A stretch of DNA of 64,000 nucleotides from Schmidtea nova. Taxonomy: Eukaryota. Each line of letters opens with the position of its first letter. The stretch's first letter is position 1. The stretch is from contig CM097882.1 of NCBI GenBank assembly GCA_044892505.1, positions 542,190,001-542,254,000 of the forward strand, given 5' to 3'. The translations under genes were made by a program, and so were the position numbers. This document shows positions 27,601-52,084 of the stretch, piece after piece. The notes under the pieces were generated by a model. The model saw nothing but the letters and a program-made list of their open reading frames with translations. It had not been told where the DNA came from and searched no databases.

Positions 27601-30600
27601 TTTGTGAAAGTACTTCTCCGATGGTATCAAAACTAGCATCAGTATCTAAAATGAACTCCTTTTTCAGATCCGGAAAACATAAGATTGGCGCCGTCGTGAG
27701 TGCTAATTTCAATACCTCAAACACGCTATTCGTTCCTTCAGTCTATTCTAATTTTTTGTTACTCGGTCCGCTACACTATTGTTCTAACATCCTTGCCTTC
27801 TTTGCATACTCACTGATGAATCTTCTATAATAATTGCAAATACCTAAAAAGCTTCGGAGTTTCTTTACGCAATTTGGCTTCCCAAAGTTTTGTATGGCCT
27901 GAATCTTAGATGGACCTGTCTGTACTCCTTCCTTGCTGATTATGTGTCCTAAGAATCTGATTTCTTTCTTTATTATTTGACACTTTTCTGGATTAGTCCT
28001 TAGTCCTGCTTCCTCAATCGCCTTTAACACTTCTCCGAGTATTGTATAGTGTTTCTCTTTACTGCTTGAATAAATCAAGATGTCGTCCAAATACACCATT
28101 GCTCCATTTATTTTGCCTAATACTTTTGTCATCATTTCTTGGAACGTACCTGGTGCTGCTTCAATTCCAAAAGGCATTCTGTTGAAACAATATTGTCCGT
28201 TCTTTGTTGAGAAGGCTGTTTTCTCTTGTGATTCTTCTAATTCCACTTGGTAATATGCATTACCTAGATCGATTGAGCTGAAAAAGACGGATCCTCCTAA
28301 CAAATCCAGCATCTCTTCTATGTTTGGCATTGGAAATTCCTGCCTCTCTGTTACCGTGTTCAGCTGTCTGAAATCCAAGCATAGTCTAATATCCTTTTTC
28401 TCTTTTTTCCATACACATATTAACGGCGTGTTCCATGGAGACTTACATTTCCGTATAATTCCATTTTCGTACAAATTTTGTATTGCTTCTTCAATCTTTG
28501 ATTCCAAATTTAATGGTTGGCGATATGGTTTTATGTTTATCGGCTCACCTCTTGTAACTATCTTATGTTTTACCAAATGTGTGAGACCCACATCTCATTT
28601 ATCTGCCATAAACACGTTTCCACTGTTTGTTATAATTTCCTTTAATTTGCTATCTTCATTGATCTTTAACTGTTCCAACGCTCGTATCAATCGTTCTTCA
28701 TCCTTTATTTGTCTGCCAAATTTTGCTTCAATGTTGCAAATATAGTTCTTGTTTTTTTCACTAGCCTCGATATCTTGAATTTTTAACAGTCTAAATCCAA
28801 ATGTTTCTTGTAATTCGACTCCTCCAATCACATCTGGTGTCACTTTCTCCGCCACAATGAATATAACTTCCTTCGAAATATTTCCAATGGTTACTTTCAC
28901 CTTTGTTTTTCCTATTGTCTCGATCGTACTCTCGTTTGCGCATCGTAACTTATCGTCACTTTTCGTCAATTGTTTTCCTCGTAACTTGTTAAAACAGTTC
29001 ACACATTACATTGATTCTTGCACCAGTGTCTAATAAACAGTCGAAATTTTCCCCATTCATCCTTACTGTTATACTAGGCCTTCCTTGCATTTTTTAATAC
29101 AAAATATTAACAGCCTGCTCCGTTTTAATGGTTCCAATTCTTTCCACTTCCTCTTCAAACATTTTTCTCCTTAGGAACCTGTATACTTTCTCGCTTACCC
29201 TTCCTACATTCTCCCACTTTCCTGCCCCTTGAGGATATCCCATCAAATTTTCTGTTAGTATATGGCTCCAATCAATTCCTCTACTGGTGGAGCCCTGTTG
29301 TTTGGGTACATCTTCCTAAAATTATCTTCATTTGTCTCTACACACGATTCCCTCACTTCTTCTTCCTCGATATCATTTATCCGACTGTATCTGTTTCCCG
29401 TGAGTCTTTGCCTCTCCATTGCTCTCCTGTAACTCATTTTTGTATAACACTCCTCGGATCTATGACCATTTCTACTACATCTTTCACAACGTATTTCCTG
29501 ACACAATCTTCTTATATGACCTTCTTTCCCAAAACCAAAACATTTTGGAGTTTTTTTATCTGGACAATTTCTACTTATATGTCCGCTTCTATGACATGTC
29601 CAGCACTCTATTTTACCTTTTTTTGGACAATCAATTTTCGTGTGTCCTATTTTGTGGCATAACCAGCAATCTGGTCTTTCTCTTCAAATACTTTCTTCTC
29701 TCTGTTCTTTCTGCTTGTACTGTACTCTTCTCTGTGGCTCCTGATAGACCACTCTGACGTTTATCCGATATCTTTGCTTGTCCACTTTATCCATAAGAAT
29801 TAGTGTTTTCTTTATTTCTTCTGTGCTTTTTATCTTCCGTAGTATTACTTCTTTCTCGACTTCTTTATTGTCAGCACATACTATCAACATCTTTGCTGTT
29901 AATTTCTCTTTCGTAAATTCTTTATTTTCAAACAAAGTTATCAACAAGGTCCTCCACCTTTTTAAAATATGTTTCTATTTCTTCACCCTTCCGCTTGTAA
30001 TTCAACAAGCTTTGCAGATCCTTTAATACATCTCTTTCGCGATCGAATGCCAATCGCAACCTAGCCTGGAATCCTTCTGCTTTTTCAGGGTTTTGGCATA
30101 CACTTCTAAGAGATCCTCATCAATCATACAAGATGTTAATCTTTCCTGATCTCTCTTCTGCTTGATTCCCTTGGCATCGAAATAAATTTCGCATCTTTTA
30201 ATAAACTTTTCCAAGTCGTCACCTTGGCAGAACACCCTTGGTATCAATCTTTCGGGGATTGCGTCAGTGTTTACCGCTGCCACCATATTAAGATTTTCAT
30301 CCTTTAAAACATTAGAATCAGTTTCACAACAATTTGAATCCATAACTTTTATTTCAGAAAAATATAATTATCAAAATAATGTTTTCTTAATAATTTGTTA
30401 TTTAAACAAATTTTCAAAAAATATTTTTCTAATTAAAAATATTTTTATATTTTAAAAATCAATCTTAAAATTAATTTTTAAAATTTTTCAATAAAAATTT
30501 CTTAAATCTTCCAACTTCCTCATAAAAATCATTAATTTTTAATCTTTTATTCGTTTTACGATGTTGTTAATTTTAGACAATAGAACAAATGTTTTCCCCT

Positions 30601-33600
30601 ATTTTGCGCAAATTTTCGGCACTGCCTTTTTAAAAATATTTAATAACATTTGTTAAAGATAATTCTGTAAATTTGTGTTAAATCAAAACAGGAAAACTTT
30701 GATCCATTGTTTAAAATAATAAAAATAAACAAAATCATTAAAAATTTTAATGTTTTTGTTTTGGCCATTTTGTTGGTGGATTGTTATTTTTATTCAAAAG
30801 ATATTTAACTTTGAGATAAATTTTTTAAAATGAGGATAATTATGAAGTCCTCAGTGAAGTTTTCTATTTAGTAGTTCAAAATATATAGTATATTTTCGAT
30901 AAGTATTAGGGTCTGAATCAATTGTTCTAAAATCCAAATCCATTTTTATTAATTTATTTGAAACTTAAGAATTTACGTAATTTTTCAGTGAGAAAAGATT
31001 TTCTAATTTTTTACGTTTATCAGTATGAGATGTAAAATTAAAAATATTTTAATATATAAAATTTATTATAAATATATATTTATTTTAAATATTATATATA
31101 AATACATAAAGTTGGTCAAGATATCCAAAAGTTTATTGTGAAAATCTAATGACTTTTGTAATATTAAATAGCGAATAGCGTTTGAAAAACAATTTTATCA
31201 GAACATTTTTGCCTGGTAAAGCTTTAGGAATATGACGTAAACTCTGAAGATGTGTATAAAAACAACTTATTCGAGTATTTCACAATCACTCAACAATTAA
31301 GAAAATTTGCAGAAAGCACTGAATAATAATAAAGGTGAATAAAATGTAATAAAAAACTTTTGGAAAAGTTTGAATAAGCTGGTTGAAATATTCTAAATCA
31401 TAAACGCTAAAATTAAAACAACATTTTAAACATAGAATAAACAATACTGTTTTAATAAGATAAAAAAATAATTAGAAAAATAATTAATAAGGTACTGGTA
31501 GAGCTGAACTCGAAAGATGCAGTGGTATATTTAGATATTTTAATTGTTTTTCAAGATCTGTTCAATAAAGTTAGGAAACATTTGGCCTTGGAAACGTTTA
31601 AATAGACTCTTAAAATCTTTATCTTACACAAGTTTTGTATCTAAAATTTCTCTATTTCTAGAAAATTATCGTGTGGCCCTCCAAAAATATTAATTTTCAT
31701 TAGGCCCTCGGCACAAAAGGTTGTCCACCCTTACTATAGAAAAACATTGTAAGGCAATAGAAAGAATTTTTAGAAAAATAGAGAAAGCAGAATTAAAATA
31801 AAGATCTTCAATATACCATTTTTATAAAAGAAATAAAATTTGTTAGACACGTCAATAAAGAATTAATTAAAATATCCAGATAAAATAAAACTAACAAAGA
31901 TAATGAAATATTAAAATACTTAAAAAAATTAAAGAGTTTCTGGGGTCTGGACAATTTATTCAAAAGTTTACAAAACAGTGGAAAAAATCGTTGGAAGCGT
32001 TCTGGAACTAATCAAAAAAAACTAATATCTACTGACAAGTGTGAAACGAGTTTTGAAAATGTTAAAAAATAGACTAAGTTAAACCATAGTTTTGATATAT
32101 CAAGATTTCATAAAAATGTTATATTAGATACAGAAGCAAGCTTCGATAGAATTGGAGCCGTACTCTATCAAATACAAAAAAACGATAATTAAAGAATTAG
32201 TCTATGGTTTTCATGTAATAAGTAAACGCGAAATAGGTTACTGCATTTCACGAAAAGAATTGCTTGCTAATTATTATTTTTAAACATTATGTGTATGGCA
32301 AATCATAAGGCAAATTCCTTCATAATGAAAACCAAGAAACTGTTGACACCACAGTTTCAAACATTAATGAATTACTTAAGTAGTTCAGATATTGATTTAC
32401 ATTAAGGGAAGAAGAAATCTATTTGAATGTCAAATCTACATGATGTCAAGAAGTAATGATCAATATGTTTTCAATGTTAAATGATGCACTATGATCTTAA
32501 AGTAAGGAAACTAAAACCAAGTATTATCAATGATGATTGATGATGCAGAAAATACGGCTAAAGGAGTGAGATAAAAAAAGTGATAATCACAATGAAATAT
32601 CAGTAAAATAGGACTAGTCAAATTTTTCATTGATTATGGAATAGTAAAATTTAAAAAGGTTAGATATATATGCAAGAAATTAAACGAGAATATATCGAAA
32701 ATTACTGCAAGAAGCTATTTTATTTGTGAGATGTTTTATCAGAAACATTGAATTGCTAAAACTTCTTAAAAATTTGGAATGTGAAATGTAAAACTAAAAA
32801 CACTTATATATTAAAAAAATTTAAATAATTAAAAATATAAGCCTCAGTATGTTGTGTTGAATAAATGACTGAAATCTTTCCTTCACACTCATTCACACAC
32901 ACACACACACACATAATATAATATAAATCTGTATATCAATATCATATTTTGTGGAGTTTTTGTGCACAATTCAAAAAATATGCGCATTTATCATCAAAAG
33001 TTTACCCTTCAATTGACAAAAATATTTCTCGGAGAAAAGATATAATTATTATCATAAAATTTGCACCATTTTACAATTTACAGTGACAAATAAATAATAT
33101 GTATATGTAAGATGTGTAAATAACACCTATCATTATTTCAATATTTATTAAATAGTGATAAATATTGAAAAAAGTGGTTTAAATATTGTGATTGAAATAA
33201 ACAGATTTGAAATTAGTCTATTTTAATTAATTAATTATTATTAGCCAAATCCGAAATATTACTTGGCGTCACGAGCAGGATAAGATTATCTGCACGAATT
33301 TCTATTTAAAGAAAGTATTTCAAAGTTAATAGTATTCAAACGTGGATGATCAATTTAAATATCCTTGGAAAAGCACACCGAGCCGGCAAAAGATATTGTC
33401 CAAAAATTTAATGATCAAGAGTTGAACAGACGAAAAATTGGATTTATTTTTAAAATTTTATGATGAAGATATTATTAAGGAAATCAGCAGTAAAAAGAAA
33501 TCTGACGAGAAATCGACAATAGAGTATTATTCCGAAAGATTTTTAAACTTTGAAAAAAAATTTAGAAGCTGACAATATTATTGAAATAATCGATTTTATG

Positions 33601-36600
33601 CGAGTTGAACGTTAAGGTGTTGTAGAATTTGCAGAGGTATGTATAATAAAACTATGCTTTTGCACTTAAGGTTTTGAAACAAAAATCGTTGGAGAAAGCA
33701 GCAAATAAAATCAAGAACCAGTACAATATATTTGGAACGCCAGAATAAGAAAAATATCAATTAATTAAAGTTAATTTGCCAGCTAATGAAACTATAACTT
33801 CACTTAAAAAAAGAGATTTAAAGATTACGTAAGATTATAATTGAGATGTCACAACAATTACAGAAAGAATCCGCCAGACCGCAGCAAAATAAAAGTAAGT
33901 CAATCTATAATTGTAGAATGATTGGATATCTAACACGTTTTTATCTGGCAAAAATGACGGAACACGTCATAAATGATAAACAAAAATAGTAGAAAACCAA
34001 CGACTGAGGAGAAATATACAAATTACATCAATGAAATTGGAAATGGAACCAAACCAAAAGAAAAGTAACAGAAATATAAACAGGCAGTAATTTCAAAAAG
34101 TGGACCATAAAAGCGGGGAATAAATCACAGAATTTCAAATTGAAAATCAATTAGTACGAGTAATGTTAAATGCAGGAGTAGATCTAAACGTAATCAATCA
34201 AGAGTTTGAAAAGAAATTACAAAAAAATAATCCGACTTCGAATTTACGACTCAACTACTAGAGTAAAATGTGCTTACGTGCCGCTGTTAATTGTGTGGAA
34301 AAACTACAATTAAATATCGCTATTGGGCCTTTACTTACCGACCACATGTTTGGCATTATGTATAATATCTTCCCTCGTGTATTTATTGGTATGCAAAGTA
34401 TGAAAAAGTTTGATATAGCAGTAAATGCGTCCGAAGACTCTATTGAGCACTGTACCGTCGTTAAACTAATAACCGCTGTGTTAGCGAGTCATAATGACGA
34501 GGTAATATTCAGGAACTAGATTTTGATAGTTTTTTTAAAAGATAATATTAAACTGGATAATATTTATGCTGGAGGATTTTTTATTTGAGGAATGATTTTT
34601 GATAAAAGGAACAATAGAATTGAAAATTTGGATCAGTCCTGTATATTCAGAGAAGGCAAAATAAATATGGCGAAGAGATATTTTAATCAATGATTGTACT
34701 GTAAAAAGTGAGAACGAAAACATATTTACTAGGATAAAGATGTTGGAAGGGGAATCAAAGAATCTGCATACAAGTACTATATCGAAGAATTAGAAGAAAA
34801 AAGCGTTAAGTTTACTTAAACCGTAAATGGGATGACTAGAACGAAATTAGTGGAGTAGAATAAAGCAGTTAATGGAATATTACCAAACAAAGGCAGATGT
34901 GTGCAAAAACGTTGATAGTAAAGGAAAAAGAGAATTGATGACTATTTGAACAGAAATATAGGTATTTAACAAATTTAAGATAGATATTCGATGTACAGAG
35001 ATGGTGAAACATAATATTAATAAAGGAAAATAAAACCAATTGCGATCAAGTCAATAAAAACATTTGTGGGATTAGAACTTTGGGTATATGATATGGTTTT
35101 TGATTTCTAAAAGCAGGAGGTATTAGACCAAGCACATCACCACGGAATTTACCGATTATGATTTTCAAAAAGAAAAACGGGGACATAAGAATGTGCCTGG
35201 ACTATACTCCAGTAAAGGCTTAAGCAACTAGTCCGATATTTTCCTTTTAACACAAAAGAAAGATCGAGGTACTTTTTAACACTCAATCTCTCAAGTGGGT
35301 ATTACTAAATTTCAATCTAGGAAAAAGATAGGGAAAAATAGAATTTAGTACAAAGTTCTGACACATTTTAAATTTAAAGGAATGTCTTTTGAATTATGAT
35401 CAGTTCCTGAAACATTTTGAAAACCTATAAATATGATATTAAGAAAGACGTATATTTGGATATTTGGGTAAACTATTGAAGAACATAATCTAGAAACTTG
35501 AAAAAGTGATTAATAGAGGCAGCGTTAAAGTTATGTCTTTTTCTTAACGCAGAAGTTAATTATTTAAGACATATAGGTAATTCTAAGAGTGAAAATAGAT
35601 CCAGCCAACATTGAAGCTATTCACAAAAGATAATTTTAGGATTTTGTAATTATTATCGAAGATTTATTGAAAATCACAAAAACGTCTGAAAAATTAAGTG
35701 CAATGTTAAAGGAAGATAAGTAAAAAGACTCATGTGGAAAATCTATACATAAAATTCAATTCTCACTAAAAGCCCTAAAATTTCAAAGTAAAAAGCTCTT
35801 ACATAAACAAAAATATTCACTCTCAGATTTCATTTATGTAAATATTTTAAGTATATAGACTCTCATGCGGTAAATTTATAAGTAAAAATGAACATTTCTC
35901 AGGTTTTTGTCTTTTAGAGGCTGGTTGTTTTTCATAATCTTCACTACTACCGCAAGTCTGTTTTTCACTTCTGTTTCCGAAATCTCCTCACTACTTTCTT
36001 CAGCCAAGTCTTCTGTGACTGATATTCACTTAGAATAATTTCACTTTTTGGATGAATCCCTTGTATATATTTTTCTGGCGTGATAATCTACTTTCTTATT
36101 TATTGAAATCTACAGCCCATAGAATTCTCCGGTTTCTCAGCACAACCGTTCTCCTTTCATCTGTTACATTAAACATCTTAGTAAAATCATTGTTGCCGGG
36201 TCTTTAATTATGTCTTTCATATTTTTTATAACATTTTCAACTGTTGATTTATCTTTTTGAATTGCCAAATTCAGCTTTTTTCACAACTGTTTTACTTCAC
36301 CTGCCATCAGCACAATTCTGTTCTACATTTTACATCAGAATCAAAAAGTTATATATCTATGATAAGGTGTTCCATTGGAAATTTTCCCGTTTTATCAAGA
36401 ATCAGTAGTAGTATACTTTCTTGATATCCTGCGTTTTTTGGAATTTTAGACACATCTATTGTACATATAGTCATGTCAATTAAAAAGTTTGGATGGCGTC
36501 TTTTCTTAAGAGTTAAAAATTTTTCTAGATATTTTCTTTAGAGAAATGACAAATATCCACTCTTGGTAGTACGGGAATAAAAAATCCCATAAAACTTTTT

Positions 36601-39600
36601 ATAGTACTATATATTTATATATTATTGGTGTATAGGTGGTTAAATATGATTGTTTCTATGAGTACAGTTACCATAACATTACCACCTTTATAATAGCTAC
36701 TTTTTTTGTAACCAAATTGAAATTGTACGTTGTGGTATGGAAATCAGTGAGCAGGTAAGCTTAGTTACAAAACTATTCTTCATTGTATTTCCCTTTCAAA
36801 TTCATATTTGCCGATACGAGGTCTTAAACACACATTCACTTTACATTTCTAAAGCATATTCGTTTTTCGTTTAATCTTTTTTACAAATATGACAAATTGT
36901 TATCAATTGTTTATAACAACTTTTGAATTTACATCCATAAATCTTCCAAATTTTTGAGCAGCGCGTTGATCAGACTTTATGAGTTCTGATTCGAAATATA
37001 CCATGTTGATTAGATGATTTAATTTACTGTTTAAAAAATCGCTCACGGATATAACTTAATTGTTAAACTTTGTTTCTAAAATTTTAAGTCATTTTGGTCC
37101 TTTGGGGAATTTGTGTAGAGATCTGCCCATATTTTCTGTTGAAAATCCCTAGGAATTGTTTTTGTGGTTTTGTTTTACCCAGCACCACTAATTCATCTCT
37201 GAATGTTTGATTAACCAGCCTTTAGGATAAATAAACTTAATGAGGACAAAAATCCTTATCGGGGTCTCTTTTATCCCAGGTGCAAGTAAACAAAACCTCG
37301 CCTTCTTAAGCGATATAATTTACACTGAATACGATTCAATAACAAGTTTGTGACAGGGAATGACAAACGGAGCCTATGTCGTAGAGGCTACAAAGAAAAT
37401 AACCTATTAATAATTTGTTTCAAACCACCTGCGTTTCAACCCTAAGCCAACTTTAAACGGTTTTATCTGAATGGGGATCATATGAGACAGAGTATTACAA
37501 AATAGAAAATAAAATATAAACTTGAGAATATTTATTGTCATAAAATTACCTTTAAATTACAATTACAAAAAGATTAGAAATCCTTATATTTGTTCTTGGA
37601 TAGCAAATAATTAAAATATAATTTTATAAAGAGTTCTTCTTACTCATGAGATAGCGAAGTTAAAATAAAGATTTCGTCTTCCTATTTATACTAAATTCTA
37701 TGTGCATACCACACAATCTACTTTTTTGTTTCTTGTGATGTTTGCAACAAATATCAAGCAGATCATTCGTTGCAGAGTTTTATAATTTCAACGCATGCCT
37801 ACTTAGGAATTGATTTCTATTTATAAGTATTCAACTTATTCAGAAATATTTCTCAGTGTATCGCGATTACATAGAGTTTGTCCATTAAATGGTCGTGTGC
37901 TAGGTATTATCACGTATAAATCGATTGTCTAAACAATCAAGTTTGAATTAATATAAGTTTTCTCTGTTTTTACGATATTTCGATAATTTTAATTAAATTC
38001 TTCCGTATTTTATACTTTGATTATGCTATTTTGCATTTAAATGCGAGTTATAATCATCGTTTTTTATGTAAATTTGCTCTCTCTTGGGTTGCTTTTTTAT
38101 GGTTTCGCTATCATGACAATCTCAAGAAATACGGGTTTGTATGCCTAGTGTATTGGTGCTTGCAACCTCTTGATTTTTAAGATTTTATTTACTCGTGTTC
38201 CAATGTTATTTTGTTATTTATTTGGTTTTTTTATCGTGTTTTTTAAATTAACTTCTTGTAGGTGCATGTGTATTTTCGACGCTTTTAAACAAATCAAGAA
38301 TTTCACTTCTGTCAGCTCACCTGTTTCTTTTGTTTGAGAGTTACGTCGCCGTTTCTCCTTAGCACTGCGTCTCTCTAGCTCTTGATGTTATTATTATTAT
38401 TATTATTATTAGGCAACAAATAAATGATCAATATTTTAGTAAAAATGATCAGTATTTTTTAATGTTTTTGATCAGTATTTTAAGTAAAAAATGATCAGTA
38501 AACAATTTTTTTTGATCAGTATTTTATTAAAATGATCAATATTTTAATTAAATTATCAGTATTTAATGTCATTTAATCGGTTAAAAATTAATAACTGATT
38601 AGTATTGAAATCGAATTTGATCAAACAAAAATTAACAAGTGATCAGTATTTATTCAAATAATGATTGGTAAAAGGTGATAAGTAATTTACTAGTAATGCT
38701 TTTGTTGTTTTCTTTGGTCTTCCTCGCTGACGTTTCTCTCCGATTGGTATTTGTTTGGCAGCAGGTGGTGGCCTGACATATTTTAGACGAATAGATACAC
38801 CAATTACATGCTTATACATGTATTCTTTTTAAAAAGATGGACAATTACATGTACCTTCCTTCCATTTGGCACCGTCTAACAAAATATTTACTATCCACAC
38901 AACCAAAGATCTTTTTCTAAATTGATCGAATGTATTCCAACGCATGTCTTTCACATTTGTATCTGATCCTCTGATACTTTTGATTCGTTTCCTGCAGAAC
39001 ATTAGTAGTCTACACAATTGAAAAGAGTTTTAGATGTTATTATTTTACTACTTTTGGCCCAATGGTAACCATCTGTCCATTTTTTAGATCAATCGAAGGA
39101 GATTCGACGAATACTTTGTTATTGTTTTCATAAAGATTTGATCATTTTTTAACAGAATCGTAAAAGCGTCTTAATTTCTTCTTTCATCTCTTCAGTTAAT
39201 CTATTATTATCTAATAAATTGTCGTGCATGTGATCTGCTTCAGTTCGATATAAATCAACGTATTCATTGTTAAGGTGTATCTGAAGTAAAAGGCCAGCTG
39301 GACATTGTTTTCCTCTTAATTTTGCTTTGTTACACCTATAATAAACTTTTTTAGAATCAGCAGTTCTATTTTCATAATGATAACTCCTAGTATTTTCGGA
39401 TTTAATGAAATCGATCGCTTTATCTGTATTTGTATGTCATTTCAAACTTCCAATCACGTGATCTTTTTTCATTCGATTGGTACCCCTGTTAATATTTTCC
39501 TTATCTTTATATATTTCATTTTCGAAATCATCTTCTGATTCTGAAGATTCGTAAAATGGGATTTTTATTTAGTTTATAAATTTTTTTAAAATTTAAAATT

Positions 39601-42600
39601 GTTAAGATTTAAAAATGTTAACGTTTTTAATAGTCAAACAATTAGTTTTTAAACAATAACTAATTGACTACTAATCAAATTAATTAGAATACTGGTCAAA
39701 TAAAATTAAATATTGGTCATAAAAAATAATTTGCTTTTCATTCTAATAAATTACTGATCAAGTGATACTGATCATTTTATTAAAAAACTGATCAAATTAA
39801 TAAAATACTGATATTTCATATTAAAAAATACTGATAATTTGTATTAAAATACTGATCATTAAAACCTAAGCCTTATTATTGGTATTTATAATATTCACGC
39901 TATCTATTGTTTTGTTGATTTCTTCGGTTGTTTTTATAGCGATTTCCTTGTGCCTCTAACACAACCTGTTAGTAAACATTTTTCAATTTATTCTTTCCGA
40001 TTATTGACTGCTAATCTTTCTGCCATTGTTTTTAGAATTTTTTATAAAGACTCCCACTTATCCATTCCATTATGTGTATTCCAAAATCTAAGTTAAGTTA
40101 TCTATCAGCGTCGTTGGCTTTTTGAAGGCTACTCTCAACTTTTGGTTTAATGTTTTCTCTTAAAGTTAAAAGTTTTCTCTTAGCTGCCTAAATTTCTTCT
40201 ATCAGATCACCGTCGATCATTGTATTTATGAGAGACGACTACATTTTAATTGGAATTTTTGCCATTTCTAAGAATCTTTGACTTTTCTGGTAAAGTCTCA
40301 AATATTTTTATTTGAAATCCCAACTTGGGGATGATTCTTAGATAATTAGTAAATAAGTCTTATTGAACAATAAATATTTTCTTTTTACAATGTACAAGTC
40401 TTCAGATAATCAAAAATCAGAATGTAACAAAATGCTCGATTTAACAAAAATGTCGATATTAATTTCTTAATAGATGCTGTCTTAAATTTCAATTAAAATA
40501 TGATAATAATCTTATTGGGTGCGTGTTGTGTTATCCGTACAAAAATTACGTGTAAATCAATTGTATGACTGATTTAGGTTTTAGAAATTGGTTTAAATTA
40601 CCTTAAACCAATTTATTATTTTTTTATCGTTATATTTTAGTGCAAAAATATTTTTTGTGTATTTTGTTATTTTTGGTGATTATATTTATCATAAATTTTT
40701 GTATGGGACATTCTTTAATTATATATTTTAATTTATTTCAACTATACACTTTTATTGTTATTAAATGTGTTTATTTGTTTATAATTGTCTTAAAATATAA
40801 TATTTTTAAAATTAAAGTGTTTTAAAATCCAAGCATGTTTTGATATATGTTGGTTTTATATTTCAGAAAACAACCTAAAATTAAAATAATCAATACTCAA
40901 ATTAAATTAGCACATGTTGAAATAAACAATTAAAATAATTTTTTTTTCAAATAAATTATTTTCATTTAAATATCATTATGAATCATAAATAATAACTCAG
41001 TTGATGAATTCTCAAAATCATATATCAGTTGAAATATACTTTCTTTACATAATAAAATACCATACGATAAAATAATAAATTGCTAAGTCAATGTTTTCAA
41101 GAAATCTGCCCGGGTTAGATATTGTTATGGATAATTAAATAATTTTCAGATTACTGGGTTGATTAGGCTTGAAAATTGATGTGAGGATTTGGGTTGTTTG
41201 ATAGTTGATGTTGGGCTTAAGTTGAATGAACTTGAGGGTCAGTGTGAGGATTTGAGATATTTGATGATTGTTGAATTGATTACGATGGGTGTCTAATCAT
41301 TTTTCTGAGTGTATATTTACTTTATATTTGTTCGACTCTGTCTTATAATATTTTGACAAGACGAATGTGTCGATAAGGTTACCTTCATCATCCAACATTC
41401 AGTTAATGAACTTTTCAATATTATATCTTACAAAATGTTGTCAGTACTAATCTCCCAACCAGTATATCCGTGGATCTGGTCGCAATGTTAGTTCCAATTT
41501 CTTCATTCATTGTACGTTGTTAATAATAAAATAAGTTCATGTTTAAATAAACTTATAATTTCTATGTTGTGATTATTCAAATTATTTTAATTTTCAAACA
41601 TTTTTAACATACTATACAAATATTTGCATTTAGAAATTATTTTAAAATTAAAATATTTATCAGACAAAATTTAATTTTAATTAACAAATTTAAATTTTTT
41701 TAAAATTCTCTAAAGTTTCTCACAAATTGTATACCCATATTTTGTTTCAACACTTATTTACAAGGTTTTTAATAATAAACACAATTCTCCATTTCATATC
41801 TCGATTTTTCATATTACTCTGACTCCATTTCAATATGGAAAATGTATCTTTTTTGCTCGAGATTTTTTGCAATGTTTTGTCCAGGAACATGTCAACAGTG
41901 TAAAAAAGGTTTGCGTTGTAATGAATGTGACCCATCATAAAATCGTAAACTTGCTTAAAACACTGAAAATTTTATATACTTATTTGATTTTTACAAATTT
42001 GTGCGGTTTCATCTTGTACTAAAAATATATAAATAAATAATGAAGTTAAAAAAGGTTGGAAACCCCTGACCTAGATTATTCTGCTCTTACCTGCATGATA
42101 AGTTTATTTCAAGTATAAATGTTATTCTGAATAAATATTTAGTGTAAAATAGTGTAATTATGGTTAATACTGAATTATTAAGAATTGCTGAATGCTGATA
42201 CCTGTAGATGGTCTGTGAAGTAAATAAAATACGATATATACAACATCAATAACAAAAAAACTATAAATTGCACCAGTTGCAAGCAAAGTCCTAGCCGGAC
42301 TCCTGTCATTTCTGAAACATCTAGTCCAGTGGAAAGCGCACTGGAAGCTGAGAATCTTAATGTATATTTTGTATATCCTTCGCCTGTAACGTTATAACTT
42401 TTGAATAAGTTTCTTTACCTGTCCAGGGCGAATCCACGTGCCTTTGAGTGGTGTCCGTGGTGTCACTTTCACTAGATTCTAAGTCCTTAATACACCGACT
42501 GAGAAAATATGTTATATAATAGCAAAACCAAACAAGCTCACAATTAACCACCCTTTTTAAAACTCTCAGTCATTGATCACAGTACAACCATATTTGACGA

Positions 42601-45314
42601 AAAGCGGGGTGGAAAGGTTGAATTATAGCAGTTAATTGTTATAATATTTAGTTACAAACATAATTTCATTAAAATTAAACTCTTACTGGACTTTGGAAAA
42701 TTATTTAAATCAAAAAAATAATATTTATGATAACTTTTACAAATATTAATTTAAAATAAATTAATGTGAAAATTAAGGTAATCCAAGTAATACAAACGAA
42801 AAACAAATAACTATTTCTTTTAGAATATAATTTTCATCCTAGATCTTATAAATTATTTTAATAGTTTCAAAATTATATACACTTTTAGAACTAAATATTC
42901 ATTTACCAAAATATTGATATCTTATATGTGAAAAATAACTAACTTTATTTTATCTTTCCAAAAAGTAAATATGCTGCGATCCATAAAAAATAAGTAATGG
43001 CAACGCATATTTATTCATTTTCTTGTATTCAGTTTTATATTGATTTCAATCCTCGGATTTCGCTTTGTATTTCAGCATCATTTTATTATTTCTTACTACT
43101 GGTGAATGAATTGGGATATCAAACCAATCATAAAACCGAATTCTCATCTCATCGTTTACTGCGTACGACATTAACATGACAAAAACATGTTACTGCTTGC
43201 CTGCGATAATACATCAATTGTTATTGAATATTTGATTTATTATTCCAATTTATAGTCGAATTCACCATTCTCTCATTGGAAATGAACCTAAATCCATTAA
43301 GACGACTAATATACACACTCAAACACATGTTGTATTTGTAAGGTTCGGAATTAAATGTCTTGCTGTATAAGTCAATGTTTCTTTTTTGTTAGGAGATAGA
43401 TTCTCAGTCATCCAATCAAATACCCCGCAAATTTCTGAATTTTCTTTCCATCTCAATTACTTTTTTGTCGAATTATTTATTTTCCCATCAATAATTTGTT
43501 TCAATGTAATTGTCTAATATGCGCCATTTACTTTTGCTCAAAAATGTCAACCTGCAAATAAATCACAAATTCACTTATTTCTATAATAAATCTATTTCAC
43601 TTCTTTATTCTAATGTCGCGGCTGGTGCTCATAATTTTTCAATTCATCAATTGGCTGTTGCGATTTTGTCTCAATCATCTTAATCCGTTGCTTTATCTAG
43701 TTTGCATCTATACATCAATAACAATAATTAATGATCAAACTTCATTGATTGATTTGATGTTTTTTTCCATATCTCTTCTCAGCAATGAGTTCTCATTCTT
43801 CATTTCTGTCGTGTTGTCTTTCTCTTAATTTTTTATCTCGAACATTTTTTTGTTAAAATCACAAATAATAATATAATATTTTAATAAATTTAATTCTTGA
43901 TTACAATGTCTGTTCTCTCTTCAATTCGACAATATCATTCATTGGTGATTCCATCTTTTGACGTAAATAGTTGCCCAGTACAATCAATAATTTGCTATTG
44001 AGTTCTCATTCTTCATTTTTGTCGTGTTGTCTTTCTCTTAATTTTTTATCTCGAACATTTTTTTGTTAAAATTACAAATAATAATCAAATATTTTAATAA
44101 ATTTAATTCTTGATTACAATGTCTGTTCTCTCTTCAATTCGACAATATCATTCATTGGTGATTCCATCTTTTGACGTAAATAGTTGCCCAGTACAATCAA
44201 TAATTTGCTATTGAGTTCTCATTCTTCATTTTTGTCGTGTTGTCTTTCTCTTAATTTTTTATCTCGAACATTTTTTTGTTAAAATCACAAATAAAAATCA
44301 AATATTTTAATAAATAAATTTACTTCTTGATTACAATGTCAGTTCTCTCTTCAATTCGACAATTTTATTCATCGGCGATTCCATGTCTTGACGTAAATAG
44401 TTGCCCAGATCAATCAATAATTTCCTATTGAGTTCTAATTCTTCATTTTTGTCGTGTTGTCTTTCTCTTACTTTTTCATCTCGCATATTTTTTGCTAAAA
44501 TCACAAATAATAATCAAATATTAATCAAATACTTCTTGATTGCATCGTCAGTTCTCTCTTCAATTCGATAATTTAATTCTTCGCCGATTCCATCCCTAGA
44601 CGTAAATTTTTGCTTAGATCAATCAATAATTTGCTATGGAGATAATTATTCTCATTGAGGGCATTTATCATTCCATTATTTATCACTTCATTCATTTCAC
44701 ATCCAATTTCATTGAATGAACCGTTGATCGGCTGTTTTTTGTCATGCGATCTTTTATATATTTGTAACTGGTCTTTAAATTCACAATTTATCTTAATATT
44801 TGATCATAATTTCTGAATTTTGAACGGAAGACCAATGGTAATATCTTTTGGATTTATCATTTTCCTTTGATAAATCTCTAAATAAATTCCTTTTGATGTT
44901 CCTAGACTGAACTTATCATATCTATTTAAATAATGCTCAATGCAATCATAGCAAAAGTGACATTCACAAAGACCATTGTAAGCTGTTATCATTAATTCCC
45001 CATGTTCCTAAAGAATTAAATCAAAGTAACTGAGTAAAAATATTTTTATATATTTTAAAAATTTTCACGAAATACTAAAATTCAGCCTGCGACCTACATT
45101 TTGAGAACCTTCGTAATTGATAATAAATGACAAATAAAATATTTATTAACTGTAATTTAGTTAATTAATATGATTTAAAAATTTATGAATATATGTGAAT
45201 AAACAAACCAATAGATTATGTACTAGAAATGAAATAAAATTCTTTAATTGGGCAATGTAGGCTTATAAATTTTTTAACATTTCGTTACACTTTGGTTATT
45301 ATAATTATCTTAGC

Positions 45315-45397
<83 letters not shown>

Positions 45398-48300
45398 AAA
45401 AGATATGTCGCCCAGTCATAAAACTCCTCCTCAACGGTGAAAAGTAGCAAAGTCACATTTGTATCAGTTAACCAATTTACACTCTTACTCGCTGATATTC
45501 GCAATAAAATGAACTGCTACCTACCCCAAAATCCAATCCTGGTTCTTAACTAATGTAATCAAATGCAACGCGCGGAAGCAGATTTTTGGTCACCTACGTC
45601 ACCTTTTCTAAAAAGTCCTTGAGGATATTTACTGCTTGCAGAAGATTGATTTGGAAAAGTTCTTTGTTGTTGATTGCAGTAATCATCCGTTGTACCAACA
45701 CTAACTTGTATTGGTGCTTTATGTTTTGAATGACTATCGCATCATAGGCTGAGTATGTGACGTGTTGTTTGGAGGTAGGAAGAACAGTGTAATGTTCACC
45801 AATCCCTCGTTCGTCGGATGAGCAACAGTTATTGAGGATTAAGGCAATCTTACGCTTGCCTGTAGCCATGTGTCATCTAGGAACGACTGTTTGCTTCAAA
45901 CATTAATGGGACATGTTCTCCTCCGAAGCATCGTGGTATTTGGGAATTTTCAATCACGATTAATGGTTATTTGTATCCCAATGCGCTTCATGGCATAGAA
46001 CTGTAATCCGCTCTTTTGAACGCTTTACTACACTGCATTTTGTGATTTTGAAATTATTAGTGTTATTTAGTAGGATGTACTAGAATATCTTATCAACGTT
46101 GAAAATATTACTAAGGCTGAGTACATACAATATTACTGGAAGGAGATTATTTCACCAGTCTCCATAACATAATTCGTTCATCAACAGCCGCTGCTTCGCC
46201 ATGGAGTTTTTTTGCAACAACAGAATGGCATATTTTCGAACGATTAATCCATTTTTTGTCTATCTTCGTGCTTAAACTACAGTTTTCTTGCGAACTCTTG
46301 GGGTAGATCTCCGCATATTCGAGGTCTACCGGCAGCACAGTTCTGCACCACTCAAGAAGAACTGTGTAATCTTCTCTAAGAAAAATGACTTGTTGCACAT
46401 AACTCTCGTGTTCATACCACTTATTGTGTCTTTAAGGCTGTGAGTGGAAATGGAGGGTAGAAACAGCATGGACTACGTATATAGAGGGCATCTAAAATAT
46501 ACTGCTTTGTATGCACGTTTTCCTAACAAAGGCCTTGCGCTAATAAGAGTTCTGTACTGAACAGAACGCATTGATAATGTATTTCGATGCTCACACGCCA
46601 ACTTAATCTTGCTAATAAGCTAATAATTTCATATTTGTGATTGAGAAGTTCTTGGTATAAAACAAATCTTGCTTTTATGCGACATTCTTTTAGACAACCT
46701 CAATTGTGCTTAACAACTTGATAATAGGTGAATTTTTCAATCTCCTTGAGAGTTTGAAAATAATATTGTGATATAAATTTTAGTTTAATTTAAATTGTTT
46801 ATGGATGTAATAAATACTAGGAGTTCTAAAAAGAATAGTAACTTTAAAATCAATTCTTCGATTCGAAATTTTTGTATTTTTTTAATTTTAATTACAATAA
46901 AATTTAAACGTACGCATATGTTATCATTATAATTTCCGATCTTTTTTTCCACTTTTGATCTTGTAATAATTTCTTTTTCTTACAACTCAGATTTTTATCA
47001 TTTTATTTTTTACTGATGAAAATTTGATCCGTTTTCTGAAAAAAACGAAAACTCAGAAGTACATGTCAATAATCCTGAATACGTTAATTTATATTTAATG
47101 TTTTCTTTTTTCGTCATTTTTCTGAGGATAAATACGATTTGATGGAATTATTTTAATACATTTATCACCACGGGGTTCTTAGGTATCCCTGTCGATAATG
47201 CTAGAATCTTTTCTTGCCTTGAAAGTATTTAAGTCAATTATTTTAATTTAGTTTTCTAGCTTAACCTCTTACGCGGTTTGATGCATTGTTTGAAGCATAT
47301 ATTCGTCATATCCATTCTATTCATCTTTTTATGAATATGTTTTACATTTTGCACAATATTTGTTGACAAAAATGAAATCTTATCTTTATTATTTTAGTTT
47401 ATATTTATAACAGCTTATAAAAAACTGAAATAAAAGTTACAAAAAGGAGGGAGAAGTTATAGGATTGTAATTATATTTATATTTTTTGTGAAACAAATTA
47501 GATAACATAGAATTTGTTCTTTTGTATAATAAATTTTAAAACACGGAACTGAATACAATCCTGTTTTATACTCTTCGCACCAATACCTCGCATTCACTCG
47601 ATTTAATTTTTTTGATGACACACATGACAGTGTTTCGTTGGTTTAGCATTTTGCCGTTGATGGTAAAAACAAAGGGAAATGTCTTTCACCAAGTCTAGAT
47701 GGTTTCGGCGTTATTGAGATCTTCTTGTAGATGAAAATTCAAAAAGATTTTTAGTAAATTACGTTTCTTAATATAAATTAAAAATACGACACCTAAACAA
47801 TTTGCAGTTTGCAATGCGTACATCCTTTTTCTATTACTAGGATCGATTTCGCGTATATATTCGACATAATCATTAAGAATACAAAGCAAATTCATGATGC
47901 GAGTATATTCGTCATAAACACTGCAATACATTAGACCAGACCTGCACAACATACAGTCCGCTGGCCGCATTCTTAAATTCACATTAAATTTGAAATAATG
48001 TAAAAAAAGCGAATTAATGTAAGTATAAATGTTACTAATAAAAAAATTTTCTTTTTATTTCTTTTCGGCCCTCAACTATTTTCTTTGAAATTATTAACAA
48101 GTTTCTAATGTGTTTAATTTTTGTAATTCAATCGATTCGTGTGGAGCCCATTTCTGAATCTTTTTGACCATTGTAATTGTCTTTAAATTGTTATGAACGG
48201 CTGTTTTTGAGAAAGACAGGTTTATAGCAAGTTTTCGAACAGATCTTGTGAAAATTTGAGCAACAGCTTCACGTAAATCTTCCTCCGACAGCTTGATATC

Positions 48301-50456
48301 AGGTCTACTGCGAGCAGGGATACCATCTTCGAGATTTAAATATGCGAGACAAAATCTCGAAATTGAAATAAAGAAAAAACACATAATTTGAATATTTCAA
48401 ATATTCAATGTATATATATTATTATAATATTTATTATAGTCACAAATAATGAAAAAATAAAATAAAAAAAAATTATAAAAAACTAAATAATAAAAAAATA
48501 TATGCTTAATGAAAAATTAACAAATTAACAAAACATAACGAAACAGAAAAAAGGAATACAACCATAAAATATAAACTTAAAAATGAGATCAAAAATTCAA
48601 AAACAATAAAAGTAAAAAAAATTAAGATTAATTTATAAATATCAATGGTATTTATCTTTAGATTTTATTTCTTTTACAATTGAATCATCCTCTTTCAAAA
48701 ATTTTTGAAATTGTATGCAGTTCATTCCAAAATTTTGTTTCACCATTAATTCCGCTTCTAAATTTTCCAATAATAAACGATTTCTTTCTTTCCGCCAAGC
48801 ATTAGTCATAAGGCTAAAAATCCTTTCAGGTATAGCATTAGAATGCGGAATAGAAAATATTACTTGCACAATTTTAGTAATATTTGGAACATTATACTTC
48901 TTATAAAATATTACCCATTTTTCTTCAATAGAAAATTCTTTTTCTGTATTACTTAATTCGCGAATAAACTTTTTCAAATAAACATATTCCTCATACAGCA
49001 AATCTTCATTGATATAAATTCTATAAGCTGCAACAATATCTTTGATCTCTTGAAATTCGGGAATGGACCGTAAATTTAAGTGATATAGTATTTTTAATTT
49101 ATTGTCGTTAAAATCAAACCATTTATCAATATACTTTTTAGCAGCATCAAAAAAATTGTTGGCATCTATTTTAAATCGTTTTTTAATACTTTCATTATCA
49201 CAATTATGAAGGATTTTAATTGCAATAGATCCATAAAAATTATCATTTTTTCTTGCTATTAACGATTGCCTTATGGAATCCATTATTGTGTAAATATCTA
49301 AAATCAATAATTCGTTCCCTTGAAGTTTTTTGAGTGCCGGTTGAAAGATTGAACACGCATTCATTACAAATCCAAGATAAGCCTCAGCTAGCTCGTCGTC
49401 AAAAAACATTCGTTTACAAGTTGAAACACTATTTTTGCTCATAAAATACGACTTGATTGGTTTGAAATTTAATAGCAACCTCTCGATAGCTGGTAAAAGT
49501 GTTAACCATCTTGTGGGAATATGCTTCAACATCTCGCACCACTCGGTTTGAGTCCATACAAAGTTTGCGTGTGGGACGCGAGAAATATCTTAGGTGTGTG
49601 GGACAATCCCACCTAGGGCGGTACAGATGGTAACCCTGACTGCGAGGCATATTTTCGAGATCAATTTCTCCGTCATTAAATCATTTAAACCAACGCCTAA
49701 TAGTTCTTTCATTAACTGTATCGCTCCCAAAAGCATTATTAATATTCCTCTCCGCCTCAACTGAATTGTTATTCGATTTCCACTCATATAAATAAAGAAG
49801 TCTCAAATCATGATTTTCTAACTTGTACATTTATATTTGAAAATGAAATTTATAGTAATGAAATTATTATAAATCTTACTTAATATTCGAATATGAAATA
49901 AGCGTTTTCTAATGAACTTTAAAATAAAGAAATACGTGTATATAAAAAAAGTTATCATGATTTAAAGTTATTATAAATTATTCGGACATTTCATTCCGGA
50001 CAACCTAATAATAAAAATTTTAATTCTTTTGCTTAAATCACATGCAGTCGTTTCGGCAGTCAACTATTTTCTTTGAAATTTTCGGTCCTCGACGCTTCTG
50101 AAGTTGTGCAGGCTTAAAGGGATAAAATTTATTGATTTTTTGTTAATTCCAGGTCTTTTTGAAGGCAAATATTAACGTGATTGTGAATTTATTTGTGGCG
50201 ATTTGTATTTTATTTATTATAACTGTATTTTTTGAACTAATGTAAATTTTGCTTTTTGCAGTATCGTTACGACGACACGTTGAAAAGAGTAGTTATTGAG
50301 CCGTTAGAACTTGCTCAGGAATTCAGAAAATTTGAATTTAATTCGTCATGGGAAAATTTTCCTCAATTTAGAGATCTAGAGAAAAATAAAAATCACATTA
50401 TTGATTCGACATCTATTGAAAAACCGAAGGAAATCGAAGACAAAAAACCTGAATAG
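15621..50456 (+). CDS. NDUFS3: NADH:ubiquinone oxidoreductase core subunit S3 (complex I 30 kDa, NuoC family); spliced gene, 5 exons, 269 aa
   Basis: join(15621-15657,15709-15792,15881-16128,17374-17619,50262-50456) = 810 nt. All four introns are GT..AG and the frame is preserved. The product has an N-terminal presequence-like segment, then [18 protein letters not shown]|[63 protein letters not shown]|[24 protein letters not shown], recognisably collinear with animal NDUFS3. Confidence 0.95.
15709..15792 (+). CDS. NDUFS3: NDUFS3 exon 2 (Ser/Thr-rich targeting peptide part)
   Basis: Open between the acceptor (15708) and donor GTAAGA (15793). Phase 1 joins exon 3 to give P-T-I-R-P. Confidence 0.8.
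15881..16128 (+). CDS. NDUFS3: NDUFS3 exon 3
   Basis: Acceptor TTTTCAG at 15880, conserved sequence TIRP..RFE, donor GTTTGA at 16129. Confidence 0.95.
16247..16925. mobile_element. Possible TTAA-flanked MITE in NDUFS3 intron 3
   Basis: TTAA at 16243-46 and 16926-29. The ends (CCTTTATACCG vs rc CTCTCGGTCTACCG) match only imperfectly. Confidence 0.4.
17374..17619 (+). CDS. NDUFS3: NDUFS3 exon 4
   Basis: Acceptor TTTGTAG at 17373, complex I 30-kDa signature [22 protein letters not shown], phase-0 donor GTAATT at 17620. Confidence 0.97.
17950..18019. mobile_element. 70-bp piggyBac-like mini-element
   Basis: TTAA-CCCT...AGGG-TTAA (TTAA at 17946-49 and 18020-23). Confidence 0.6.
18070..18710. 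repeat. About 180-bp tandem array, roughly 3.5 units with one internally deleted
   Basis: aattttaacca recurs at 18091, 18274, 18379 and 18559 (spacings 183, 105, 180). Confidence 0.9.
18930..19375 (+). mobile_element. Second Penelope-like GIY-YIG remnant
   Basis: [28 protein letters not shown], then a frameshift into [23 protein letters not shown] (ORF 19019-19243). Confidence 0.75.
19860..20660 (+). pseudogene. Degraded hAT-type transposase fragment
   Basis: [23 protein letters not shown] resembles hAT catalytic-region sequence. Palindromic AATACCGGTATT motifs at about 20614 and 20655 look subterminal. Confidence 0.55.
20905..21570. repeat. Inverted repeat, arms about 225 bp (20905-21130 / 21350-21570), spacer about 220 bp
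   Basis: rc of the left arm matches the right arm at an estimated 80-85% by eye (gttttagtatgatgttaatttt; gattgaatgtttatatagaattaaa). Confidence 0.88.
23227..25817 (+). mobile_element. Degraded piggyBac element, 2591 bp
   Basis: TTAA TSD (23223-26, 25818-21) and TIR CCCTTAAATGCAT with 2 mismatches. Transposase fragments at 24444-25166 ([22 protein letters not shown]) and a C-terminal Cys-rich domain at about 25486-25600. Confidence 0.9.
24005..24394 (+). pseudogene. Ty3/gypsy gag N-terminal fragment inside the piggyBac
   Basis: [29 protein letters not shown] aligns with [15 protein letters not shown] of the gag at 30023-30286. It has two in-frame stops. Confidence 0.7.
26016..26268 (-). repeat. 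3' LTR (253 bp), termini TAT...ATA
   Basis: Direct repeat of 30286-30525 with about 6 substitutions and a 13-bp indel. It is preceded on the minus strand by PPT AAGAAGGGGGA (26269-26279). Confidence 0.93.
30273..30285 (-). promoter_or_regulatory. Primer-binding site complementary to tRNA-Leu 3' end
   Basis: TGGTGGCAGCGGT is complementary to ACCGCTGCCA-CCA, the 3' end of animal tRNA-Leu(AAG/TAG) as recalled from vertebrate sequences. Confidence 0.85.
30286..30525 (-). repeat. 5' LTR (240 bp), termini TAT...ATA
   Basis: Direct repeat of the 3' LTR, abutting the PBS. Confidence 0.93.
31750..32600 (+). pseudogene. Heavily degraded Ty3/gypsy RT/RNase H remnant
   Basis: [17 protein letters not shown] and [11 protein letters not shown] match the RNase H of 27314-27724. 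Confidence 0.75.
33106..35800 (+). mobile_element. Degraded Ty3/gypsy element: putative 5' LTR, tRNA-Ser PBS, gag, protease, RT remnants
   Basis: TGTAA..TTACT (33106-33263) is followed by TGGCGTCACGAGCAGGAT (33264-33281), complementary to a tRNA-Ser 3' end. Protease-like [11 protein letters not shown] at about 34165; [21 protein letters not shown] at about 35130-35205. Confidence 0.75.
35900..36520 (-). pseudogene. Degraded gag remnant next to LTR-like copy D
   Basis: Purine-rich, stop-riddled sequence resembling the gag at 29400-29950. Confidence 0.5.
36640..38390 (-). repeat. LTR-like long dispersed repeat, copy D (approximate)
   Basis: rc contains aagcttacctgctcactg, gtataaatagg (TATA-like), gacaataaatatt (polyA-like) and taggcatacaaacccg, all matching copies A/B/C. 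Confidence 0.65.
38411..39873 (-). mobile_element. Foldback Mutator-like element with degraded SWIM-containing transposase
   Basis: Arms are rich in TGATCAGTATT (left) and AATACTGATCA (right). Termini are AGGC..GCCT, flanked by TATTATT on both sides. The interior encodes [41 protein letters not shown], homologous to 1830-2010. Confidence 0.75.
39900..40330 (-). pseudogene. Degraded gag N-terminal remnant
   Basis: [13 protein letters not shown] resembles [12 protein letters not shown] of the 30286 gag. Confidence 0.5.
43015..45007 (-). pseudogene. TRAF-family pseudogene (RING, zinc-finger remnant, coiled coil, MATH/TRAF-C)
   Basis: Acceptor TCTTTAG at 45008, then [27 protein letters not shown] (RING-like). 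Coiled-coil exon(s) follow, with GT-AG introns at 44495-44532 and 43552-43600. A MATH-like stretch reads [33 protein letters not shown]. Multiple stops and frameshifts. Confidence 0.78.
43787..44640. repeat. 213-217 bp tandem repeat, 4 copies
   Basis: gagttct recurs at 43787, 44000, 44213 and 44430. Confidence 0.93.
45317..45394. repeat. (TA)39 microsatellite
   Basis: Direct inspection. Confidence 0.98.
45530..46420 (-). pseudogene. Degraded Tigger/pogo (CENP-B HTH plus DDE_1) transposase
   Basis: 46147-46398 ([25 protein letters not shown]) and 45594-45869 ([33 protein letters not shown]). Confidence 0.8.
48094..48384 (-). pseudogene. Mariner transposase N-terminal fragment
   Basis: [34 protein letters not shown] is a variant of the mariner WVPHEL region. 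Confidence 0.8.
48642..49790 (-). pseudogene. hAT transposase C-terminal part with dimerization domain
   Basis: 296-aa ORF with [14 protein letters not shown] and [22 protein letters not shown]. Frameshifted upstream catalytic remnants lie at 49590-49787. Confidence 0.88.
50262..50456 (+). CDS. NDUFS3: NDUFS3 exon 5 (terminal)
   Basis: Branch-point-like ACTAAT at 50236 and acceptor TTTTTGCAG ending 50261. Phase 0; encodes [38 protein letters not shown]-stop, the conserved NDUFS3 C-terminus. Confidence 0.93.
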
Positions 50457-50527: not shown

Positions 50528-52084
50528 TGCTTTTTTGATTTTCTTTCTAACTATTTTATTTTATTATTTATTTTTATTATTGGAATTATAATTTTTCAAA
50601 GATGTTAACTATAACCATAAGTCTTTCATTGGATAGGGAAATTGAGAACCTCATAGGAGTTGGAAAATGGGAAGAGTGACTCCTTGAACCGGATTTAATT
50701 AGATAAATAAAATTTTAATTTATGATTTTTGTAAATTCTTTAAATTAGTAGTTGTAAACTTTTTGTTCGATTTACCATTTTCACCATTTCCATAACAACT
50801 GAGCGCAAAATAAATTTGTAAAATATATTAATTTAATCTAGCCAATCTTGTTCTAGGTATTACCTGATTGCATGTATTGGGGCTAATCTTCTCGTTGTTC
50901 ATACGTACTTAATAGGTGAAACATTAAACCCGCCTCTTAGTTTCCTTTTAATTTAGCTGAAAAGAAACATTATTTAATTTAAGGTAATTGAATTCAAAAA
51001 ATGAGATCAGAGGTAAAACCAAAATATAATTATGAATTATTTTAATAAAATAAGTTTGTTAAATAAACAAATTTTGGTAAGGCTAAGAATTTCAGAGGTA
51101 GTAAGAAATTTCAAACTACTAGGTTAAAAAATCGGAATTCACTGTAAAAAATAAATGCAACGTAAAATATCTTCAGACGTAATTTTTAAAAATATGATGT
51201 GCTTGCTTGTTTGTTTATTTTATAACTTTTAGTAAAAAAATTTATATGTACTCGAGAATAAGACCATGGTCTTTGTAATGTACTAAATTTTGTTGTTATT
51301 ATTATTTTTTTTTCTTATTGTTACGATTCGTATAGTGATGTGTGGGTATTGTGACCCCCCCCCCTTCTTTTTTTGTTATTTTATTCTTACATTTTTTATT
51401 TTACATGAAAATTAAATTAAAATTCAATAAGACAATTTCTATAGAAATTGCAAAACCAAAATAAAATAAGAAAATTGTTTAGAGAATTTCAAAATTAAGA
51501 ATTTAACCGAGAGAAAATTAAAACAAATTGAAAATATCTAATAAACTAAAGCAGAGGTGTCCAAACTACGGCCCGCGGGCCAAACCCGGCCCGTCAGGCG
51601 ATTTTATCCGGCCCGCCAAGGATTTTGAAAAATTTCGTAAAATATAAATGTAGCGTGGCGCGCGGTATTAGATCTCGCGCAGATGACGAGCGCATTCGGT
51701 TAGAATGAACCTGTTATCACACTCGAAAAAGTACAGTCTGGTATTCAAGTTTTTTTCGGTAGTCGGCGATGCGAATCAGTCGCTCGACTACAATAATGAT
51801 TTTGTACTCTGACTGTACATAGGCGGGGCGGAGCGGCAGACTGCACTCAACTGCAGCGCCAGCAAAGCTACGAGATTGTCCACAAAAAAAACAAAAACTT
51901 GTCGGCCGCGGAGCTTTTTTACATTATTTACAGTTGATATATTGTAAATTAGTATGTTTAAAAAAAATACAACTTTAGTCAATCATAATAACAAAAAAGC
52001 AATCCCCACAAATTAGTATGTTTAGATTTATATTTAATCTATTATAACTTAATTAAAATAAAAATTTTTTTTTTAAAGTTGAAC

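Follow-up and report, generated by a model that had tools for sequence, protein, structure and literature searches.

Within an intron of the NDUFS3 gene, on the opposite strand, lies a stretch of sequence that resembles parts of a TRAF protein and is broken by stop codons and frameshifts. We asked whether this stretch derives from a TRAF gene, whether that gene is dead, and whether it was copied as DNA or through an mRNA. Judged from sequence, the locus is, with a probability of roughly 0.85, a TRAF pseudogene of non-processed (DNA-level) origin that belongs to a lineage-restricted family.

Genomic position of the remnant

The window, that is, the whole 64-kb stretch of DNA analysed here, is 71% A+T, contains zero N, does not resemble human DNA and is rich in transposon remnants. 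NDUFS3 is encoded on its plus strand. The ORF at 17389-17712 matched Pfam Complex1_30kDa (E = 1.9e-30), and the exon within it stops at 17619, just ahead of GTAATT. The last exon (50262-50453) is preceded by TTGCAG and matched NDUFS3 chains in complex I structures (E = 1.2e-12). With both flanking exons checked, the donor at 17620 and the acceptor end at 50261 delimit the host intron.

17620..50261, plus strand: NDUFS3 host intron, 32,642 nt, GTAATT...TTGCAG, containing several transposon remnants

The TRAF-type remnant occupies positions 45007-43046 of the minus strand, antisense to NDUFS3 and inside its 32.6-kb last intron, and aligns colinearly with a small protein family built of RING, TRAF zinc finger, coiled coil and MATH domain. 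The first-pass annotation had proposed a TRAF pseudogene antisense in the NDUFS3 intron, with its domains in TRAF order; the verified flanking exons and the colinear family alignment bear out the first point, and the second held as well, with RING core, TRAF zinc finger, coiled coil and MATH domain all aligned in that order on the minus strand. The short strings that it had quoted were all located on this strand: CECHFCYDC at 44968-44942, in the frame running from 45007; FDW at 43420-43412; a 20-residue MATH-like string at 43370-43311, in a second frame; and GEFD at about 43266-43255, in a third. Rfam and tRNA scans of the whole window found nothing, and an exact look-up of ten window ORFs against the protein collection gave no match.

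Family assignment

Queries were contiguous single-frame pieces of the remnant, with X at stops, and relatives were aligned to the DNA directly. Generic profiles gave the TRAF reading partial support at best. Among ten stop-free pieces scanned against Pfam, the single weak match was the TRAF/meprin MATH model PF21355 (E = 0.05, 14.4 bits; 43224-43388, minus strand), so that MATH was weakly detected by this check, and the RING models of Pfam matched none of the ten pieces. Comparison of three single pieces with PDB sequences returned nothing relevant, the two weak matches of the RING piece being designed DPBB proteins, and a word search with a 55-aa MATH piece yielded zero candidates. Generic profiles are therefore nearly blind to this remnant, and the significance of the assignment comes from lineage-specific relatives.

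The first of these was found with the 67-aa RING piece (44807-45007, minus strand), which matched four proteins among 1.84 billion protein representatives. One of the four, P0002 (214 aa), is a genuine relative, with E = 1.5e-5 and 54% identity over residues 4-64 (pairwise E = 4e-15). The matches to the other three, P0001, P0003 and P0004, were driven by repeats and were rejected as false; these are a beta-helix/PKD protein of bacterial type, a protein with EGF repeats and a lysin with GW domains. In Pfam, P0002 comprises a C3HC4 RING and a TRAF-type zinc finger (PF02176, residues 84-124), and the adjacent 76-aa piece of the same frame (44576-44803, minus strand) independently matched its residues 89-161 (E = 9e-11). 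P0002 appears to be a short isoform, in which the N-terminus is joined to the last third of the P0008 MATH domain.

Word searches from P0002 and then from P0005 recovered 13 more relatives, eight of which are full length (434-523 aa); all are identified by UniParc or MetaClust ids only. Jointly, the seven relatives scanned in Pfam carried the RING model PF00097, the zf-TRAF model PF02176, the MATH model PF21355 (E about 1e-17) and PF22486. In about 430-520 aa, members of this family combine a single RING and a single TRAF zinc finger with a long coiled coil and, at the C-terminus, a MATH domain. A profile of 14 family sequences matched the solved structures of TRAF3 (5e-26) and also of TRAF1, TRAF2 and TRAF5 over the coiled coil and MATH domain, and that of TRAF6 over the RING and finger (3e-15). 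The relatives are therefore true TRAFs, each with a single zinc finger.

When the relatives were compared with the whole 64-kb window by tblastn, matches were confined to 43177-45124 of the minus strand and were all colinear. The best of them aligned P0005 residues 31-182 to 44998-44546 (E = 2e-30, 50% identity). The MATH pieces were matched by P0017, P0009, P0012 and P0008 with summed E values between 2e-9 and 2.5e-6 (2e-9 for P0017, 3e-7 for P0009 and 2.5e-6 for P0012), and a family HMM scored 119 bits on 44429-44998. Frameshift-tolerant alignment extended these matches over nearly the entire locus: P0015 residues 7-409 aligned to 45064-43154 with 43.7% identity, 8 stops in matched codons and 5 frameshifts, and P0017 residues 1-316 aligned to 44683-43052 with 45.5% identity. 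Close full-length relatives scored 413-523 in these alignments and the most distant one (P0016) 218; four shuffled versions of P0015 scored 105-127, roughly one quarter of the value for the true sequence.

The family assignment rests on one small set of unnamed database proteins, because the generic profiles barely detect the remnant, and the closest relative is only 49-56% identical to it. A tree of the N-terminal block was an unresolved star in which the nearest row was P0005 (56% identity over 143 columns), and we therefore name no parent gene. The terminal branch of the remnant measured 0.92, about twice the family median of 0.47.

Domains of the remnant and their decay

The alignments divide the remnant and its upstream edge into the following features, listed in the direction of the minus strand; the tandem array overlaps two of the domain blocks.

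45008..45100, minus strand: upstream edge; no homology beyond 45007, where an acceptor-like ttctttAG adjoins
44546..45007, minus strand: RING core (Cys3-Cys6), followed by a linker, a single TRAF-type zinc finger and the first part of the coiled coil, in one uninterrupted frame
43786..44641, minus strand: tandem array, four units each 209-217 bp long (TRF: period 213, 4.0 copies, 91% matches, score 1326)
43741..43824, minus strand: upstream exon end, coiled coil, 28 residues (BLASTP P0014 209-230, 64% identity, E = 3e-7)
43697..43740, minus strand: retained intron, 44 nt, phase 0 (GT 43740-43739, AG 43698-43697)
43457..43696, minus strand: second coiled-coil part and linker to MATH, with several in-frame stops (BLASTP P0017 87-105, E = 2e-5)
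43049..43456, minus strand: MATH / TRAF-C remnant in three frames, running to the C-terminus of the family
43046..43048, minus strand: TGA stop codon, coinciding with the end of the relatives

The N-terminal block carries two stops, a TGA at 44806-44804 and a TAA at 44575-44573, so that 45007-44576 reads through 144 codons of one frame with the TGA as its only stop. A RING-like sequence is present there, as had been proposed, but it does not form a separate exon: one unbroken 453-bp block runs from it through the zinc finger into the coiled coil. Four of the eight RING ligands are kept; Cys1 and Cys2 were not recovered, and other residues stand at Cys7 and Cys8. The zf-TRAF stretch aligns to the zf-TRAF region of P0002 with most of its ligands mutated. 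From the relatives to the remnant, the zinc-ligand changes are CPG to SLG, HMRTC to SHDKK and SCPF to NGSF, and the first finger Cys is deleted together with two neighbouring residues in a 3-codon deletion.

At the 5' end, the first approximately 30 codons of the relatives, which include the Met and the first RING Cys-x2-Cys, were not detected upstream or anywhere else in the window, and tblastn with residues 1-30 was blank. We considered an in-place 5' end, in which KFLKYIKIF would correspond to WKFMKENKFE, and rejected it as chance-level: with the family matrix, the best upstream 10-mer ranks 1436 among the 127,942 positions of the window.

Downstream, P0017 residues 85-188 were aligned by tblastn to 43702-43394, spanning the second coiled coil and the linker. 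The MATH remnant is frameshifted at least three times, near 43390, 43290 and 43177, and adjacent stops at 43242 and 43239 replace the WP of the relatives. Its C-terminal piece matched P0017 residues 287-316, the end of that protein, with E = 6e-4. In total, the disabling lesions amount to at least 8 in-frame stops, 5 frameshifts (relative to P0015) and the loss of most zinc ligands.

These lesions also bear on whether the damage is real. Long-read assemblies produce indel errors in A/T runs, where some of the frameshifts lie, and a working TRAF gene could in principle be disguised by errors of assembly or sequencing. Such errors would also have to account for at least 8 stop codons of substitution type, the replaced zinc ligands, the finger cysteine lost by a 3-codon deletion, the double stop in place of the WP of the relatives and a 213-bp duplication that is out of frame, and we regard this explanation as the least probable of all those considered. 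Given its stops, its frameshifts, the undetected first 30 codons and the lost ligands, the TRAF copy is dead and does not qualify as a functional protein-coding gene. Presumably no TRAF protein is produced from it, and it serves no function itself.

A tandem array within the coiled coil

The first-pass annotation had listed a coiled-coil region and short GT-AG introns. It overlooked a fourfold tandem duplication of 213 bp in this region, which was identified by TRF and by unit alignment. The array was also recovered by a repeat search and has the properties of a minisatellite (period above 10 bp, head-to-tail order, high identity). Each unit consists of a copied coiled-coil segment (NE..KLLIDL..ELKRE.T), a spacer and 17 residues, and residues 146-182 of P0005 were matched four times by tblastn, once for each array unit.

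In the frame of the relatives, all four units contain the same TAA (K-[KN]-stop-EKDNTT), and the units join out of frame. Between units 3 and 4 the identity is 98-99%, and these two have an additional TGA in common. Since the TAA is common to all four units, the array grew after the death of the gene. It is a minisatellite that arose from dead coding sequence and does not represent an adaptive extension of the coiled coil. Among intact relatives, coiled-coil length varies through internal duplications; P0009 is about 78 residues longer than P0012, to which it is 90% identical.

The AT-rich spacers of the 213-bp units have GT..AG-like ends and were considered as candidate introns. We rejected them: the distance from ELKRE to QKICEM equals that in P0010 and P0011 without a gap, and the unspliced frame matches the relatives on both sides. 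A 38-nt GT..AG stretch in unit 1, whose removal would open the frame into unit 2, was likewise discarded, as the unspliced frame matches QKICEIESNEMENRGEI of the relatives. In genomes of this kind, AT-rich GT..AG stretches easily pass for short introns, which calls for caution in annotation.

A probable retained intron and the mode of copying

One interruption did behave as an intron. The two pieces on either side of the 44 nt at 43740-43697 match residues that are adjacent in the relatives (E = 3e-7 and 2e-5), and removal of the 44 nt joins INE to IKQRIKMIE, as in INEIKQ of P0014, restoring both the frame and the alignment. With P0009 and P0013, the frameshift-tolerant alignments jumped over exactly these 44 nt, 43740-43697, and with P0011, P0014, P0015 and P0017 the placement of the jump was equivalent. 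The short introns of planarians peak at 45-85 bp (PMC13594981). We therefore accept the 44 nt as a probable retained intron; by our estimate, the chance that a later insertion would show GT..AG ends is about 1%.

The proposal of several short GT-AG introns held for this one alone, because elsewhere the spacing of the remnant equals that of the coding sequence of the relatives. The block at 43457-43696 differs in length from its counterpart in the relatives by a few codons at most and thus holds no additional intron. A 49-nt GT..CAG candidate at 43600-43552 was rejected for want of room, the distance from NKEV to KQII being 32 codons in the remnant and 28 in three relatives.

Could the copy nevertheless be a processed pseudogene, that is, a retrocopy of a TRAF mRNA in which the 44 nt were inserted later? 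Save for the 44 nt and the tandem array, the coding sequence runs colinear and unbroken for about 1.3 kb, and AATAAA motifs occur downstream of the stop. The proposed insertion, however, has GT/AG ends, lies between codons and is of a size typical of planarian introns (PMC13594981), and its removal restores frame and alignment; moreover, the scarcity of introns may be normal for the TRAF family itself. No poly(A) tract was found 3' of 43046 on the minus strand. Retroposition thus appears improbable. With one intron kept and no poly(A) after the stop at 43048-43046, a DNA-level origin is favoured over retroposition, in agreement with the first-pass annotation, which had called the locus a DNA-level duplicate.

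Capture and transport of a gene fragment by a transposon, a route suggested in the first-pass annotation, is another alternative. The host intron is packed with transposon remnants, the gene lacks its 5' end, and just upstream lie a (TA)39 run and an ORF with a weak pogo/Tigger-type DDE_1 match (45597-45869, E = 0.0015). Nearby transposons are, however, to be expected in any long intron of a transposon-rich genome. A search around the TRAF remnant found no terminal, inverted or long direct repeats that would bracket 43.0-45.1 kb, and the window holds no second copy. We judge such transposon-assisted spread to be, if anything, slightly less probable still than retroposition.

The preferred reading remains that of a non-processed pseudogene. 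The copy is colinear with the family from residue ~31 to the C-terminus. It has gathered nonsense codons and frameshifts and lost zinc-binding residues while keeping one 44-nt GT-AG intron. With at least one stop already present, a 213-bp piece of the coiled coil was then duplicated out of frame, leading to the four tandem units. The remnant may have entered the intron as a duplicate, possibly 5'-truncated, or may be a former working nested gene that died in place.

Comparison with known TRAFs and implications

The relatives share with TRAF2, TRAF3, TRAF5 and TRAF6 the order of RING, TRAF-type zinc finger, coiled coil and C-terminal MATH/TRAF-C domain. Human TRAF2, TRAF3, TRAF5 and TRAF6 have four or five zinc fingers each, whereas in the relatives there is just one. 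Their RING also carries a Cys where canonical RINGs carry His (CGCRFC); among the relatives with an N-terminus, this motif is CGCRFC in 11 of 12 and CGCIFC in P0006. Compared with the human TRAFs, the copy in the window is broken and cannot work as a TRAF.

An expansion of TRAF/MATH genes has been published for S. mediterranea, with 121 MATH domains and a large lineage-specific set (PMC6109357). Pseudogenes like the copy in the window are to be expected from a birth-and-death family, and the remnant would be a single dead member of such a family. The locus is an example of gene death within a lineage-specific TRAF expansion and an ordinary by-product of an already known expanded family. It resembles duplicated, non-processed pseudogenes nested in introns in its kept intron, its lack of poly(A), its many lesions, its position on the opposite strand and its long host intron, and it differs from typical duplicated pseudogenes in its missing 5' end and in the minisatellite grown from coding sequence.

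The kept intron suggests that at least this TRAF family spreads or decays at the DNA level, and the array shows that a minisatellite can be seeded by a dead coiled-coil segment. The locus is best annotated as a pseudogene and not as TRAF or NDUFS3 exons. Generic Pfam models miss the remnant, and lineage-specific relatives alone reveal its TRAF identity. A regulatory role is conceivable, in which the remnant would still be transcribed, its RNA would overlap the NDUFS3 pre-mRNA and alter its splicing or expression, and a polymorphic copy number of the array would modulate this effect; we consider this putative role highly improbable.

Neighbouring elements in the window

The 71% A+T of the window and its piggyBac and pogo-like DDE_1 transposons agree with the published genome of S. 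mediterranea (PMC6109357). The truncated 5' end of the remnant has a perfect (TA)39 microsatellite (45317-45394) immediately upstream of it. This is adjoined by the pogo/Tigger-like DDE_1 ORF, which is on the minus strand and whose match falls short of the cut-off for acceptance.

Two other transposase sequences lie inside the NDUFS3 intron. One is a piggyBac-type fragment at 24759-25163 on the plus strand (DDE_Tnp_1_7, E = 1.2e-27), and the other is a hAT C-terminal ORF of 296 aa at 48645-49532 on the minus strand (Dimer_Tnp_hAT, E = 3.4e-10). A further hAT-type transposase at 52079-53899 on the plus strand looks nearly intact, consisting of ORFs of 244 and 358 aa in the same frame with one stop between them; Pfam assigned it a Spin-doc/BED zinc finger and a hAT dimerisation domain. 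By eye, ORF runs at 26482-30343 (minus strand) and 7659-9849 (plus strand) resemble LTR-retrotransposon gag/protease/RT/RNase H/integrase.

At 38423-39860, inverted repeats of 48-60 nt, 83-88% complementary, stand about 1.2-1.3 kb apart. Between them lies a FLYWCH-like ORF (39152-39436, minus strand; E = 5.6e-4, below the Pfam cut-off), and the whole element is possibly a small DNA transposon.
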